Positions 35,353 through 44,676 of a stretch of 64,000 nt of DNA are shown here, one piece after another. The translations under genes were made by a program, and so were the position numbers. How positions within the stretch are numbered: position 1 is the first letter of the stretch; each line of letters begins with the position of its first letter. Under the pieces are notes generated by a model. It was given only the letters and a program-made list of their open reading frames with translations, searched no databases and was not told where the DNA came from. This stretch comes from Haliotis rubra (Eukaryota), in the NCBI RefSeq assembly GCF_003918875.1, contig NW_025767057.1:1922001-1986000 (forward strand), in the 5' to 3' direction.

Positions 35353-38300
35353 CTAAAACGTCGTCTCTTTGCTGTCCGTCACTCCCTTGCTAGCCAGCTC
35401 ACACTTGACCCGCCCCAGATAGTCCGGGTCGGGGTAGCCGAATCTAAATACAGAGTGTCACTTCAATACGACATAGAAACAAGCAGTTCGACAAGCATCG
35501 ACTGTTGTTATGTGAATGTACACAGGATATGTTATTTCTCACTTCATAGAGGTTCAGTTTGTGCTTATGCGATGTGTTGCGAGTGTATCATTTACCAAGT
35601 CGTAAGATGAACTTGAAAATACCACTCGTTGAAGTTGTATTTACATATGAAACTTACGCTGGCTTCAAATCGCAACATAAAGTTCGCTATATGGCCGGGA
35701 AAATGGAACGTTAACTCACTCACTCACTCACTCACATGTTTATATGTCCCATGGGTATAATTGCTTTGGAAAAAAATATATTGTATCGACTTTTTAATAA
35801 ATAGTAAAATTATCATTTTAAAGTACGAACAGACACAATATGTTTACCTGGTAGGTCCACCATCCATTTTCGTCTTATGGTGGATGTCGTTCCATGTTAC
35901 GACATTTTCCTGACCGGTAGTAGAAGACCGACCGACGGTAAATGTTAACTTCCTGTCAAAAGCCTTCCTCAGGAGACGGAGAACGTCTCTTCCTTCTCGG
36001 CAGTCTGGCAGGAACGCTCGTCTCTTTGTTCCCTTGTAGGGCTGTCCTGGATTCGGATGATCTGCCTGCAAGTTTCCACATGGATCTGGCATAAGTTTTG
36101 AAAACATTACACCAAAGCATCGGGCTGTAACGATTTATAAATCAACATTATCTGCCGAAACAGATTCTCTTCGGAGCAAAAGGCAAGATATAGGTGAAGT
36201 TAATGTGAATGGATTATTGAAAATTAGCGATATGCTCATAAAAGTTTTAAGCTAATGAAGGAAAACCTCAACATGCTTCTTCATACAATTAAGATAATAA
36301 CAATAATTACGAATGTTATAAGGCAGTCATATACTAGTATATATCGTGTAACAATGTTCCACGTGTTGTGGGGCGGTGGGGTGGCCTAATGGTTAAAGCG
36401 CTGGCTCGTCACGAAGACCTGGGTTCGAATCCCCACATGGGCACAATGTGTGAAGCCCATTTCTGGTGTCCCCCGCCGTGATGTTGCTGGAATATTGCTG
36501 AAAGCGGCGCAAAACCAAACTCAGTCAGTCCAAGTGTTGTACATTGTAAGGTTTGTAGTTACTACGGGGCAGTGGTGTACCATATGTAGACTTGAACTGG
36601 ATTTAGTCAGAAAGATCTGAAAGAGCTACAAGGGGCTTATTCCAGAATCCTTTTCCTTAGATAGGGAGTTAACTCTTGCCTCTCATCTCACATCACATAT
36701 CTAACCACAAGAAAGACAGCATTCTGTGTGATCACTCTATACCCGTGGAACTCTGCTTAAGCCGTTCTTCGAAGATGGATAAGTCGGATGGATATTACCA
36801 TCTCTATTTATATTGCTTAATCACTGGTCACGTGTAATATTATCTTTTGATTTGTACTGGCACTACTATTGTACTGCTGTCGTGATTCATTTGAATTGAT
36901 TTGTGAACCCACTACTAGTATATAGTAGGACACAATTGTCTATTTCATCACATAGCTTTGCTGTTTGATGGTTTCACATCTCGTCCGTTTACTGACTGAT
37001 CTCCGGCTGACATATCAACTTGGGAATCAACATGTAACGCCAATATCCAAATTCACTGTATTAATATGCGTTTAAAAGAACACATTTCACACTAATTCTA
37101 GTTTCTAGTGAGTTTAGTTTTACGCCGCACTCAGCAGTATCCCAGGTATATGACGGCGGTCTGTAAATAATCGAGTCTGGACCAAACGAGCCAGTGGTCA
37201 AGAGCATGAGCATCATTCCACACAATTGGAACATGATTACGTCAACCAAGTCAGTGAGCCTGACCACCCGATCCCGTAAGTCGCATCTTACGACAAGCAT
37301 GGGTTACTGAAGACCTATTCTAACCCGGACCTTCACAGGTAGAGACAAGCATGGGTTACTGAAGACCTATTCTAACCCGGACCTTCACAGGTAGAGACAA
37401 GTATGGGTTACTGAAGACCTATTCTAACCCGGACCTTCACGGGTAGAGACAAGCATGGGTTACTGAAGACCTATTCTAACCCGGACCTTCACGGGTAGAG
37501 ACAAGCATGGGTTACTGAAGACCAAGTCTAACCCGGACCTTCACGGGTAGAGACAAGCATTGGTTACTGAAGACCAAGTCTAACCCGGACCTTCACGGGT
37601 AGAGACAAGCATGGGTTACTGAAGACCTATTCTAACCCGGACCTTCACGGGTAGAGACAAGCATGGGTTACTGAAGACCTATTCTAACCCGGACCTTCAC
37701 GGGTAGAGACAAGCATGGGTTACTGAAGACCTATTCTAACCCGGACCTTCACGGGTAGAGACAAGCATGGGTTACTGAAGTCCATTCTAACCCGGACCTT
37801 CACAGGTAGAGACAAGCATGGGTTACTGAAGACCTATTCTAACCCGGACCTTCACGGGTAGAGACAAGCATGGGTACTGAAGACCTATTCTAACACGGAC
37901 CTTCACGGGTCAGACGGCGTGGAAATGCAATGATACTTACTCCTTGTATGCCGCTAGGCAGATCGTATGTGATGCTGATGGTTCCGCAGGTCTCATAGCC
38001 AGGCAGGTGCTCCCCACTAAAGGCCACATCCATGGTCCCCTCCGGCTGGTTCCCCGTCAGGACGCCATACACCATGTTACAGCTGGGGCACACAGTTTTG
38101 AACTTCTTGAAACTGTTATCTATGCACTCCCTACAGAACACATGGCCGCATTTATCCAACCATTTTGGATCTGAGATTGGACAAATACAAATAGGACAGT
38201 TTCTGGTCACACTCATATCAAGAAACTTTACATCATGATTACTTTCGTTTTTGTTATTTCCAGGCGATCCATTAACAAGCTGCGTGATTGTACCATCATT

Positions 38301-41300
38301 ATCCCCATTGCAAGTCCCATTGATTTCAGTCTTTATCGCCATTTCTTGCCTAGTAGAGTTGTCCATGCCTCTTTCCCTGCAAGTCCTTGAAGCATAGTTT
38401 ACTTCCCCTGGCCGTCCACCGACAGCGTCAAGATTGATCACTGGATAGGCTGAGCCATGGTTGACCCTTCTACTATGACTTTCTCTTTCATCAGAACGTG
38501 TCTGCCCGGCCACACCTGTCACCGTGGTGGTCTTGGTTTGCTGCCTCGGTTGTTGCCGCCTACCATCATCGCCCTGTCTATCCTTTCGATTTCCCTCAGA
38601 ACTAAACTGATGGCTGTCATGTGTGGTGTTGCGGTGGGTTGTGGAGTTGTTCCGCTGTACCATGGCGAGAGATGTTACAGGATCCGACCTGGATTCACTT
38701 GGCACAGTTTGGGATGGCATGTAACTGGAATGTACTTCAGCGACGTCCGACGTCCTGTGTCTGGACTCTCCCACTGTATCGCCATTGTTTTGTCGACCTG
38801 GTGAAGAATACGTGGTCTTGTCTTTCATGTTCTTGTAATCAGAGTTGCCTCCCCTTACCTCTTTGCGCCCCTCAGATCTTTCATGATCTCTGTACATCTC
38901 CCCTGCCACCTTTGCCTGCAGGCTCCCTTCTCGTCTTCCATCGTCATCAGAGGGTCCAGCAACAGGTCTTTGCACTGCTTCTCGAGTATCAACTGAGTTA
39001 TCTTCTTTTTGTACCGCTGCCGTTGCTTCAGCCCTCTCCCCATCGCCATGTCCATTAGCATTGTGTGTGTACCTCTCGGCCGGACGTCTGTGGTTACGGC
39101 CAGATCCTGAACGTTCGTTCGTTGGTGCATTTCTATAGCTGTTGTCATCCTCGTTATCTGGCCAGTGTCTGTGGCGGTTCTCGCTCGTGTCCATCGATCG
39201 TGTATATTGATTCCTTTGTATATTGGTTTCATCTCGCCTACTATCAGAAATGGGTGTGTACTTCTCTTTGTAAACACTTTGGTACTGGTCTGCATTCTGG
39301 TGTCTACGTGAACGGTTGTCCACAGGTGCCTTTCTATAGCTACCACTGTCACCGTCGTCCGTTCTGGAACCTGCACAGCCCAACCTCTTCATAAATGATT
39401 TTCGACGCTTTAAAGTTTTCTCACGACTCAGCGGGCTTCTTTCATATTCACACTGGGAATCGATTACTTCGGCGACGGATGTGTCCTTTGTTACCAAGAA
39501 CACCTTCTCCAGATACGGATTCTCAAACTTAGCCACGGCTCCAACTGCGGCCTGGGCAGCGTCTTCCTTCTTTGCACCACCTCGACCTGACAGCCAAAGA
39601 AACACACAGCGTGAACGGCAAACTTCAAACCACACAAGTACTCAGATATGTAATAGTTACCGAGTGTAAATATGACTGTCACCAGTGAACCTCACGAAAA
39701 TTACCTCATGGCATAACAAATGACTGGTTATGGTCGGGTAATGTAGGATCATTATCTGGAGGAATATGCTAATTGGCAAGTCCAGCGGATCCTGCAATCG
39801 GTAAGGGTATTTATTCTGCAGAGCAGCTTTCGGGTGACTTAGAATATATATGATACTGTAGAGTATTGTAGTGTTATGACACTAGCGTTGTATAAATGTT
39901 ATGTGGGGCATCACGTCGTTCTGTGAGTAATATAATAACACTATTGTTGTAATGTTCTTATATAGCTTTCAGCTGCCGAGACACCTGGTGTTTCTGAGGT
40001 ATATACACATGTTCATCCTCACATACATGTTATCGTCAGAGCTATACTGAAGAGACACCTGGTGTTTCTGGGGTATATACACACGTTTATCCTCACATAC
40101 ATGTTATCGTCAGAGCTATACTGAAGAGACAACTGGTGATTCTGAGGTATATACACACGTTTATCCTCACATACATGTTATCGTCAGAGCTATATGGAAG
40201 AGACACCTGGTGTTTCTGGGGTATATACACACGTTTATCCTCACATACATGTTATCGTCAGAGCTATACTGAAGAGACACCTGGTGTTTCTGGGGTATAT
40301 ACACATGTTTATCCTCACCTACATGTTATCAGCAGAGCTATATGGAAGAGACACCTGGTGTTTCTGGGGTATATACACATGTTTATCCTCACCTACATGT
40401 TATCGTCAGAGCTATAATGAAGAGACACCTGGTGATTCTGAGGTATATACACGTTTTTCCTCACATACATGTTATCGTCAGAGCTATACTGAAGAGACAC
40501 CTGGCGTTTCTGAGGTATATACACACGTTTATCCTCACATACATGTTATCGTCAGAGCTATACTGAAGAGACACCTGGTGTTTCTGGGGTATATACACAC
40601 GTTTATCCTCACCTACATGTTATCGTCAGAGCTATATGGAAGAGACACCTGGTGTTTCTGAGGTATATACACATGTTTATCTTCACCTACATGTTATCGT
40701 CAGAGCTATACTGAAGAGACACCTGGTGATTCTGAGGTATATACACACGTTTATCCTCACATACATGTTATCGTCAGAGCTATACTGAAGAGACACCTGG
40801 TGTTTCTGAGGTATATACACACGTTTATCCTCACCTACATGTTATCGTCAGAGCTATACTGAAGAGACACCTGGTGTTTCTGGGGTATATACACATGTTT
40901 ATCCTCACCTACATGTTATCGTAAGAGCTATACTGAAGAGACACCTGGTGATTCTGAGGTATATACACACGTTTATCCTCACATACATGTTATCGTCAGA
41001 GCTATACTGAAGAGACACCTGGTGTTTCTGAGGTATATACACATGTTTATCCTCACTTACATGTTATCGTAAGAGCTATACTGCAGAGACACCTGGTGTT
41101 TCTGAGGTATATACACATGTTTATCCTCACCTACATGTTATCGTCAGAGCTATACTGAAGAGACACCTGGTGTTTCTGAGGTATATACACATGTTTATCC
41201 TCACATACATGTTATCGTCAGAGCTATACTGAAGAGACACCTGGTGTTTCTGGGGTATATACACATGTTTATCCTCACCTACATGTTATCGTCAGAGCTA

Positions 41301-44248: not shown

Positions 44249-44676
44249 TCCGTCTTCTTCTTCAGCCTGCAACATATCATCCCAAATGGTTTTGAGATTG
44301 GCGATTTCTATGTGGTAGCGCACGTTTAGTCTCAAAGAAGTAATTCGTTCAATATGTTGTACAGTCTTAACAGTTTTATTATCAGGGCCTTTCAACTCGC
44401 AGGCTTTGGAATAACTGCAGATAATAGTCATTTCTTTGATATTAAATTCCGTACGAAACGTTGATCTACACATATTGCATTCACAAAAGGTGAAGGATAT
44501 TGGGTACAAGTTCACAGTTTGGGGGACACATTCTGACATGTTTTCAAAGTGCCAGTTTAAAAAATGAATACTCATATATATTTTTGGAATAACAAAGGTA
44601 AAGACGAATATCAAACAATTATCTTCCTATTCTTATTTACCTTTCCTATGTGCAAAAGTAAATGCGTTAATATGGA

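Follow-up and report, generated by a model that had tools for sequence, protein, structure and literature searches.

We analyzed a 64,000-nucleotide stretch of the Haliotis rubra genome (herein the window; NCBI RefSeq assembly GCF_003918875.1, contig NW_025767057.1, positions 1,922,001 to 1,986,000 of the forward strand). On its minus strand lies LOC124286270, a gene that encodes a macrodomain, a long linker, a C3HC4 RING and a complete DTC domain of the Deltex family in one polypeptide (Table 1; positions are those of the window unless a contig is named). RefSeq describes isoforms X1-X5 of 793-814 aa, which differ in a few N-terminal residues only. A word search with exon 2 returned a RefSeq protein of 100% identity, isoform X4 of LOC124286270 (803 aa; P0001), entered as an "uncharacterized protein"; the Macro, RING and DTC Pfam domains are already on the record for the LOC124286270 protein and its orthologues. 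Four coding exons, read directly from the DNA, are common to the isoforms (44266-43822, 39586-37941, 36065-35848 and 35443-35353, minus strand).

An earlier reading of the sequence (herein the initial annotation) had proposed that the macrodomain is split by a 4.2-kb satellite-filled intron and rejoined in frame between 43822 and 39586; both the splice sites, read directly, and the contigs from four sequencing runs described below bear this out. Exon 1, which matches isoform X4 residues 5-153 at 100% (tblastn), ends in CTT GGT ACA G^GTGAG at 43822 (the caret marks the splice site), its final base being the first base of the Gly153 codon; exon 2 starts as cag^GT CGA GGT GGT at 39586, and the join completes the Gly codon and keeps the reading frame. 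The resulting junction peptide, IPLLGTGRGGA, is common to the orthologues of H. asinina, H. cracherodii and H. rufescens. At its 3′ end exon 2 reads GGA^GTAAGT (37941), and the junction between exons 3 and 4 is placed by the RefSeq model together with the continuity of the DTC profile, which runs in register across exons 2, 3 and 4 when these are scanned separately against Pfam. Intron 1 is nearly full of a 74-bp satellite (50 repeats, 39978-43669) and intron 2 contains 12 copies of a 52-bp unit; ARAGORN finds no tRNA gene in 35000-45000, and the tRNA-like look of the intron 2 repeat was not confirmed.

Transcript-derived contigs confirm the joins at both ends of exon 2. Eight public sequencing runs, from two studies and labeled no more firmly than probable RNA, contain the gene; we aligned run contigs to 37911-39977, a stretch free of repeats, and took the junctions from the overhanging contig ends. 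In four runs, representing both studies, contigs span exon 2 between 37940 and 39589, with no coverage at 39636-39977. Past 39589, the contig of each of the four runs reads TACCAAGAAGGGGAATGGCCAACACC, the reverse complement of the end of exon 1 (GGTGTTGGCCATTCCCCTTCTTGGTA-CAG); the aligner stops at 39589 and not at 39586 because the bases CTG fit intron and exon alike. On the other side, before 37940, the contig sequence is that of the exon 3 start in reverse complement, apart from a single base. Because the contig ends read exon 1 and exon 3, both the 43822/39586 and the 37941/36065 joins are present in assembled transcripts, and since spliced joins are present and intron coverage is absent, we take the runs as transcript-derived. 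The contigs differ from the window by ~3% and may therefore come from another individual or a close relative. LOC124286270 is a real, expressed gene.

The spliced protein has the single-chain layout of macrodomain, linker, C3HC4 RING and complete DTC that the initial annotation had described, as established by a Pfam scan. Splicing matters most for the macrodomain (PF01661), which scores 33.9 bits on the spliced protein (cut-off 22; profile 13-118) and 20 bits, below the cut-off, on exon 1 alone (profile 11-104); the end of the profile (118/118) is reached only after splicing. An AlphaFold2 model of residues 18-200, built from a 56-sequence alignment, has a pLDDT of 95.4 and a pTM of 0.91, and its best Foldseek match is the macrodomain of macroH2A1.1 (PDB 2fxk, 3iid; TM 0.87, rmsd 2.0 Å, 184 columns), followed by Af1521, MacroD-type enzymes, PARP14 MD1-3 and PARP9 MD1. 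The proposed macro fold is thereby supported by both profile and model. With a single sequence, true macro matches in the PDB are weak, and they become clear with a profile: one built from the noncanonical macro clade described below ranks PARP14, macroH2A1.1, Af1521, PARP15 and PARP9 at the top. Designed "Cake" repeat proteins, which head the single-sequence PDB search of the macro region, were rejected as spurious, matching a 21-residue repeated stretch with per-domain E-values in the hundreds. A protein atlas search returned generic macro clusters only.

Alignments uphold the motif assignments of the initial annotation. IPLLGTG is kept, and five sequences, down to 36% identity, show no variation in the Asp of GDIT or in the PLLGTGRG loop (diphosphate loop 2). 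In place of NAAN the abalone protein has TGEG, and TGE(G/S) is invariant across Haliotis orthologues and paralogues; the Gly-rich loop 1 (GGG) is replaced by HES followed by Tyr in the abalone protein, with HES or DMS across orthologues and paralogues. The abalone macrodomain accordingly lacks the NAAN-type Asn and the Gly-rich loop 1 at the distal ribose that characterize MacroD-type hydrolases, and its sequence has the adenine-contacting Asp and the G-x-G diphosphate loop 2 that characterize readers. A reader with no MacroD-type hydrolase activity fits the sequence and the predicted fold, because the catalytic loops are noncanonical and the fold is nearest to the macroH2A reader class; the suggestion that the domain is probably hydrolase-dead is in keeping with these observations. 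The strict conservation of the odd NAAN-equivalent motif argues against simple decay of the domain.

The linker that follows is rich in Arg, Ser and Asp, as had been claimed, and in Gly, Asn and Thr as well (R 12%, S 10%, and G, D, N and T about 8% each), and at ~413 aa it is shorter than the ~450 aa first given. The scan of the spliced protein gives no Pfam match in this region, and its composition suggests that it is flexible or disordered. Identity to two other Haliotis species, calculated per domain, is 52-53% for the linker, 72-79% for the macrodomain, 86-90% for the RING and 90-92% for the DTC, making the linker the fastest-evolving region of the abalone protein in this comparison.

All eight zinc ligands of the zf-C3HC4 RING are present (CPIC..CGH..CREC..CPSC), and the RING ends seven residues before the start of the DTC at residue 663. 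The DTC (PF18102) is complete in the spliced protein (205.8 bits, profile 1-133/133) and matches DTX2 (1e-53), DTX3L (PDB 3pg6; 5.5e-52) and DTX1 (5e-46) in the PDB. An ungapped alignment with the DTC of human DTX3L (3pg6) gives 57% identity, or 82/144 positions by hand count. DTX3L residues H707, Y719 and E733 have been named as required for ADP-ribose ubiquitylation (10.64898/2026.04.23.720386); by alignment, the equivalents of H707 and E733 are kept in the abalone DTC as the His of IHHKT and the Glu of KCEL. Judged by its C3HC4 RING and by a DTC alignment that lacks the insertions of DTX1/2/4, the abalone RING-DTC appears to be of the DTX3L type. The N-terminal RRM and KH-like (D1-D3) domains were not found by Pfam, which gives Macro, RING and DTC only in P0001 and in two further proteins (P0002 and P0003).

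The same layout recurs well beyond the abalone. Word-based protein searches reached Haliotis only (orthologues in H. asinina, H. cracherodii and H. rufescens); one of them, run with a full-length alignment, drew its words from the low-complexity linker and gave just the Haliotis proteins already known. The breadth of the family comes from a profile search with the abalone macrodomain against 1.84 billion cluster representatives (E ≤ 1e-3, 500 matches). Architectures were counted in the best 149 other representatives; as these proteins were chosen by likeness to the abalone macrodomain, the motif frequencies drawn from them are biased. A C-terminal DTC is found in 49/149 representatives, 44 of which have a RING pattern just upstream, and the DTC-bearing matches hold one to five macrodomains. 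The named members come from gastropods (Haliotis, Gigantopelta), bivalves (Mya, Ylistrum, Pecten, Argopecten, Saccostrea, Solemya, Potamilus), a chiton (Liolophura) and echinoderms (Amphiura, Anneissia). Ten family proteins were scanned with Pfam: six are confirmed as Macro + RING + DTC, one is Macro + DTC, one has five Macro stretches + DTC, and three proteins from Haliotis and Gigantopelta have RING + DTC with a divergent macrodomain below the Pfam threshold. The Potamilus protein (P0103) combines PARP14-type RRMs with two macrodomains, a RING and a DTC. A Macro(1-5)-RING-DTC layout is, by these sequence comparisons, common in molluscs and echinoderms, and the abalone protein is one further member. 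Because the architecture is common, the novelty implied in the initial annotation, which had itself named a widespread architecture as the finding that would remove it, does not hold; RefSeq records and a 2026 preprint also precede it.

The family comparison makes a modest addition concerning the position of the macrodomain. Within the biased sample, the third NAAN position is E, Q or D in 41/50 RING-proximal (last or only) macrodomains, which seldom have a Gly-rich loop 1, while among upstream macrodomains it is Ala in 32/49, with a full NAAN in 27/49. On sequence, then, the RING-proximal macrodomain is usually noncanonical and the upstream ones are usually canonical, and the abalone protein retains the RING-proximal, noncanonical type only.

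LOC124286270 is one of several related loci in H. rubra. A genome search with the macro exon gave six further matches, five of which are paralogous macro exons (33-42% identity; Table 1), the sixth being exon 2 of LOC124286270 itself. The same contig carries two of the five, 24 and 41 kb upstream and in tandem with LOC124286270; abalone thus has at least six macro-exon paralogues, three of them on this contig. All five break at the same intron position as its exon 1. The macro exon of the next intact paralogue is past the end of the window. Within the window, 5′ of the gene and on the minus strand, there is a partial second DTC copy in three pieces (62022-62117, 61293-61511 and 53660-53722) that are 97%, 82% and 76% identical to the LOC124286270 protein. 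Its homology begins at the RING end (NMVYGV...) with stop codons just upstream, and the first piece carries a 10-bp frameshifting deletion; it is probably a broken partial duplicate. Retroelement-like open reading frames at 54300-60200, with reverse-transcriptase-like stretches among them (~58313-59546, minus strand), fill the 7.5 kb between two exons of this copy. In H. rufescens, the LOC124131666 models (P0004, P0010 and P0011) contain the DTC twice, the first copy lacking its last exon and being followed by the RING end and a full DTC, which suggests either that the 3′ exons underwent partial duplication in tandem or that the gene model is a merged one.

At the 5′ end, further small coding exons lie at 45.2-49.0 kb, including the alternative first exon of isoform X1. 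The four-residue starts MKHS/MEHS of isoforms X2-X4 map to a 58-bp tandem array (Table 1), and we regard them as doubtful: gene prediction may have produced them spuriously, or the satellite may truly supply first exons. The initial annotation had placed the 5′ boundary at 44414 (ctgcag^T), from which the open frame extends upstream, yet none of the five RefSeq isoforms adopts it, each having its acceptor at 44266 or starting at an internal ATG, and we rejected that boundary. At the other end, three copies of a 45-bp unit stand directly 3′ of the stop codon (35179-35311), probably in the 3′ untranslated region, and a 116-aa open frame just past the stop codon (33885-34235, minus strand; RPGRPRVTTARQDRHL) resembles the DNA-binding N terminus of a Tc1/mariner-type transposase.

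Table 1. Coordinates of LOC124286270 features in the window and of paralogous macro exons on H. rubra contigs (caret, splice site)
Feature	Position	Strand	Content or evidence
Alternative first coding exon, isoform X1	48952..48996	minus	Exact peptide match MQTTFGCSGSSCGHW, then GTATGG donor
58-bp tandem array, 36 copies	45135..47227	minus	Unit carries ATG-(A/G)AA-CAC-AGT^GTATGT
Exon 1 (common)	43822..44266	minus	N terminus and first 130 macrodomain residues; macro coding from about 44209
Intron 1	39587..43821	minus	4,235 bp, GT..AG
Exon 2 start	39453..39586	minus	C-terminal part of macrodomain, residues 153-197 (RGGAKKED...VIDSQCEY)
Linker	38214..39452	minus	Residues 198-610; no Pfam domain
C3HC4 RING	38079..38198	minus	Residues 616-655; Pfam zf-C3HC4 1-40/40
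DTC part 1, end of exon 2	37941..38057	minus	DTC profile 1-38
Exon 3, DTC part 2	35848..36065	minus	DTC profile 41-110, Pfam 116.6 bits; holds the WNDIHHKT histidine
Exon 4, DTC end, C terminus and TAG stop	35353..35443	minus	DTC profile 113-133
Paralogous macro exon	C2167:1989941-1990396		Macro-exon genome search
Paralogous macro exon	C2167:2006700-2007077		Macro-exon genome search
Paralogous macro exon	C2289:2412179-2412541		Macro-exon genome search
Paralogous macro exon	C2289:2427967-2428401		Macro-exon genome search
Paralogous macro exon	C990:949244-949609		Macro-exon genome search

Taken together with what is known of the Deltex ligases, the domain content suggests a protein that reads ADP-ribose through its macrodomain and writes ubiquitin through its RING-DTC in a single chain, and we hold this to be the most probable function, with moderate confidence. 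In such a protein the macrodomain, as a reader and not an eraser, would tether the chain to mono-ADP-ribosylated proteins or nucleic acids; the RING would recruit E2~ubiquitin; and the DTC pocket would hold ADP-ribose so that ubiquitin is esterified to it or passed to lysines close by. With a linker so long and flexible, a single chain could read at one ADP-ribose and write either there or at a neighboring one. By analogy with PARP14, PARP9 and DTX3L, and from the lineage-specific expansion, the likely setting would be innate immune or stress signaling.

Several points weigh against this assignment. The position of DTX3L Y719 (H594 in DTX2), which is His in DTX2 and DTX1, is Phe in the abalone DTC. 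Loop 1 reads Q-H-E-S-Y where ADP-ribose binders are Gly-rich, and together with TGEG this may mean that the distal-ribose pocket is reshaped or closed. The paralogue LOC124291318 (P0005) consists of Macro + linker + DTC, with no RING found; lacking a RING, it would not be a RING ligase by itself, and the family is thus not uniformly ligase. The immune role, finally, is suggested by analogy only.

The noncanonical loop 1 and NAAN stretch lend some weight to a possible, though distinctly less probable, alternative in which the Deltex ligase works and the macrodomain no longer reads plain ADP-ribose, having become a module for another ligand (the ubiquitin-ADP-ribose product, O-acyl-ADP-ribose, or an RNA or poly(A) end), a protein-binding module or a decoy, for example for viral macrodomain-directed factors. 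MacroH2A-type folds are reported to include nonbinders, macroH2A1.2 among them, and the E, Q or D found in 41/50 RING-proximal macrodomains resembles a conserved alternative pocket and not decay. That count is biased, however, by selection on likeness to the abalone macrodomain, and the strictly retained adenine-contacting Asp and diphosphate loop are in keeping with an adenine-diphosphate ligand. The decoy idea in particular loses ground, since neither the odd loop 1 motif nor loop 2 varies among paralogues of only ~36% identity. A more specific proposal, which we think rather doubtful, is that RING-proximal macrodomains form a distinct conserved clade whose pocket is tuned to another ligand, for example the ubiquitin-ADP-ribose ester made by their own DTC or nucleic-acid-linked ADP-ribose. 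If this were true, the abalone protein would read its own product or a nucleic-acid mark and would be a natural single-chain tool for the hybrid modification.

We consider it improbable that the macrodomain is an ADP-ribosyl hydrolase acting through the conserved Glu of TGE, such that the protein erases ADP-ribose and writes ubiquitin. This Glu is invariant in Haliotis orthologues and paralogues and by homology would lie near the distal ribose, and other macro-fold hydrolases such as PARG use acidic catalytic residues. The best structural matches are nonetheless the reader-type macroH2A domains and the Gly-rich substrate loop of MacroD-type enzymes is absent; a canonical NAAN/GGG macrodomain that could supply the activity in multi-macro relatives stands upstream in those proteins and is missing from the abalone protein. 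It is hardly credible that the fusion arose through an error of annotation or assembly, with neighboring macro and Deltex genes misjoined across a satellite, or that it represents a decaying pseudogene. The junction does span 4.2 kb of satellite, the RefSeq 5′ exons from the 58-bp satellite look doubtful and the window has a broken, partial copy of the DTC upstream of the gene, but in contigs of two independent studies exon 1 runs straight into exon 2 and the intron is not covered, the reading frame is nowhere interrupted, the junction peptide is the same in three Haliotis orthologues, the intron position is common to the paralogues and the architecture is present in many other species.

The reader-writer assignment bears on an active research area, the ubiquitylation of ADP-ribose by Deltex ligases. 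In mammals reading falls to the macrodomains of PARP9 and writing to a second protein, DTX3L, and a compact natural protein that has both functions in one chain, with just one macrodomain, could lend itself to the study of read/write coupling. Abalone are farmed and suffer from viral disease, and the tandem expansion hints that the family may have an immune role in them. The idea itself is not new, and the value of the abalone protein lies in its being a clean, transcript-supported example and in the systematic noncanonicity of the RING-proximal macrodomain. Our literature search found no paper with biochemical tests of a Macro-RING-DTC protein.

The closest known relatives are the Macro(n)-RING-DTC proteins and the macrodomain-bearing DTX3L-like proteins, a layout said to predate PARP9, which like the abalone protein contain macrodomain(s), a C3HC4 RING and a DTC in one chain. 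According to a 2026 preprint, DTX3L lost its macrodomain when PARP9 emerged, and most metazoan DTX3L orthologues have an RRM plus RING-DTC (10.64898/2026.04.23.720386); the notion of PARP9-DTX3L in a single chain has thus been put forward before. The abalone macrodomain groups with the RING-proximal macrodomain of the mollusc and echinoderm proteins. Compared with these relatives, the abalone protein has a single noncanonical macrodomain and an unusually long low-complexity linker, and no RRM or KH-like domain was found in it by Pfam.

The parallel with human PARP9-DTX3L drawn in the initial annotation is reasonable, as both systems bring macrodomains together with a RING-DTC of the DTX3L type. 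The 3′-OH of ADP-ribose is the site that Deltex RING-DTC modules ubiquitylate (PMC7615817), and DTX3L has N-terminal D1-D3 oligomerization domains, with D3 binding PARP9 (PMC10955461). PARP9 is reported to have a MacroD-type MD1 followed by MD2, a macroH2A-like reader without hydrolase activity (10.64898/2026.08.12.744356). The MD2 class is also that of the best structural match to the abalone macrodomain, and the MD1/MD2 pairing resembles the order in Macro-RING-DTC proteins, canonical upstream and noncanonical next to the RING. Unlike the abalone protein, PARP9-DTX3L consists of two polypeptides, held together through KH-like and D3 contacts. Two macrodomains and a PARP-like domain belong to PARP9, and D1-D3 to DTX3L; neither the PARP-like domain nor D1-D3 was found in the abalone protein by Pfam.

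The macrodomain of macroH2A1.1, although the nearest in fold, shares 18% sequence identity with that of the abalone protein and stands in the context of a histone tail, not of a ubiquitin ligase. It is reported to be a reader-type macrodomain without hydrolase activity; its loop 1 is Gly-rich and its NAAN stretch reads HPTN, compared with HESY and TGEG in abalone. DTX2 and DTX1, in turn, resemble the abalone protein in joining an ADP-ribose polymer reader (WWE) to RING-DTC in one chain. They differ in that the reader is a WWE pair, the RING is of the H2 type and not C3HC4, and the DTC alignment to abalone needs two insertions. Because DTX2 and DTX1 have a WWE-WWE-RING-DTC layout, a reader and a writer in one chain are the rule in the Deltex family.

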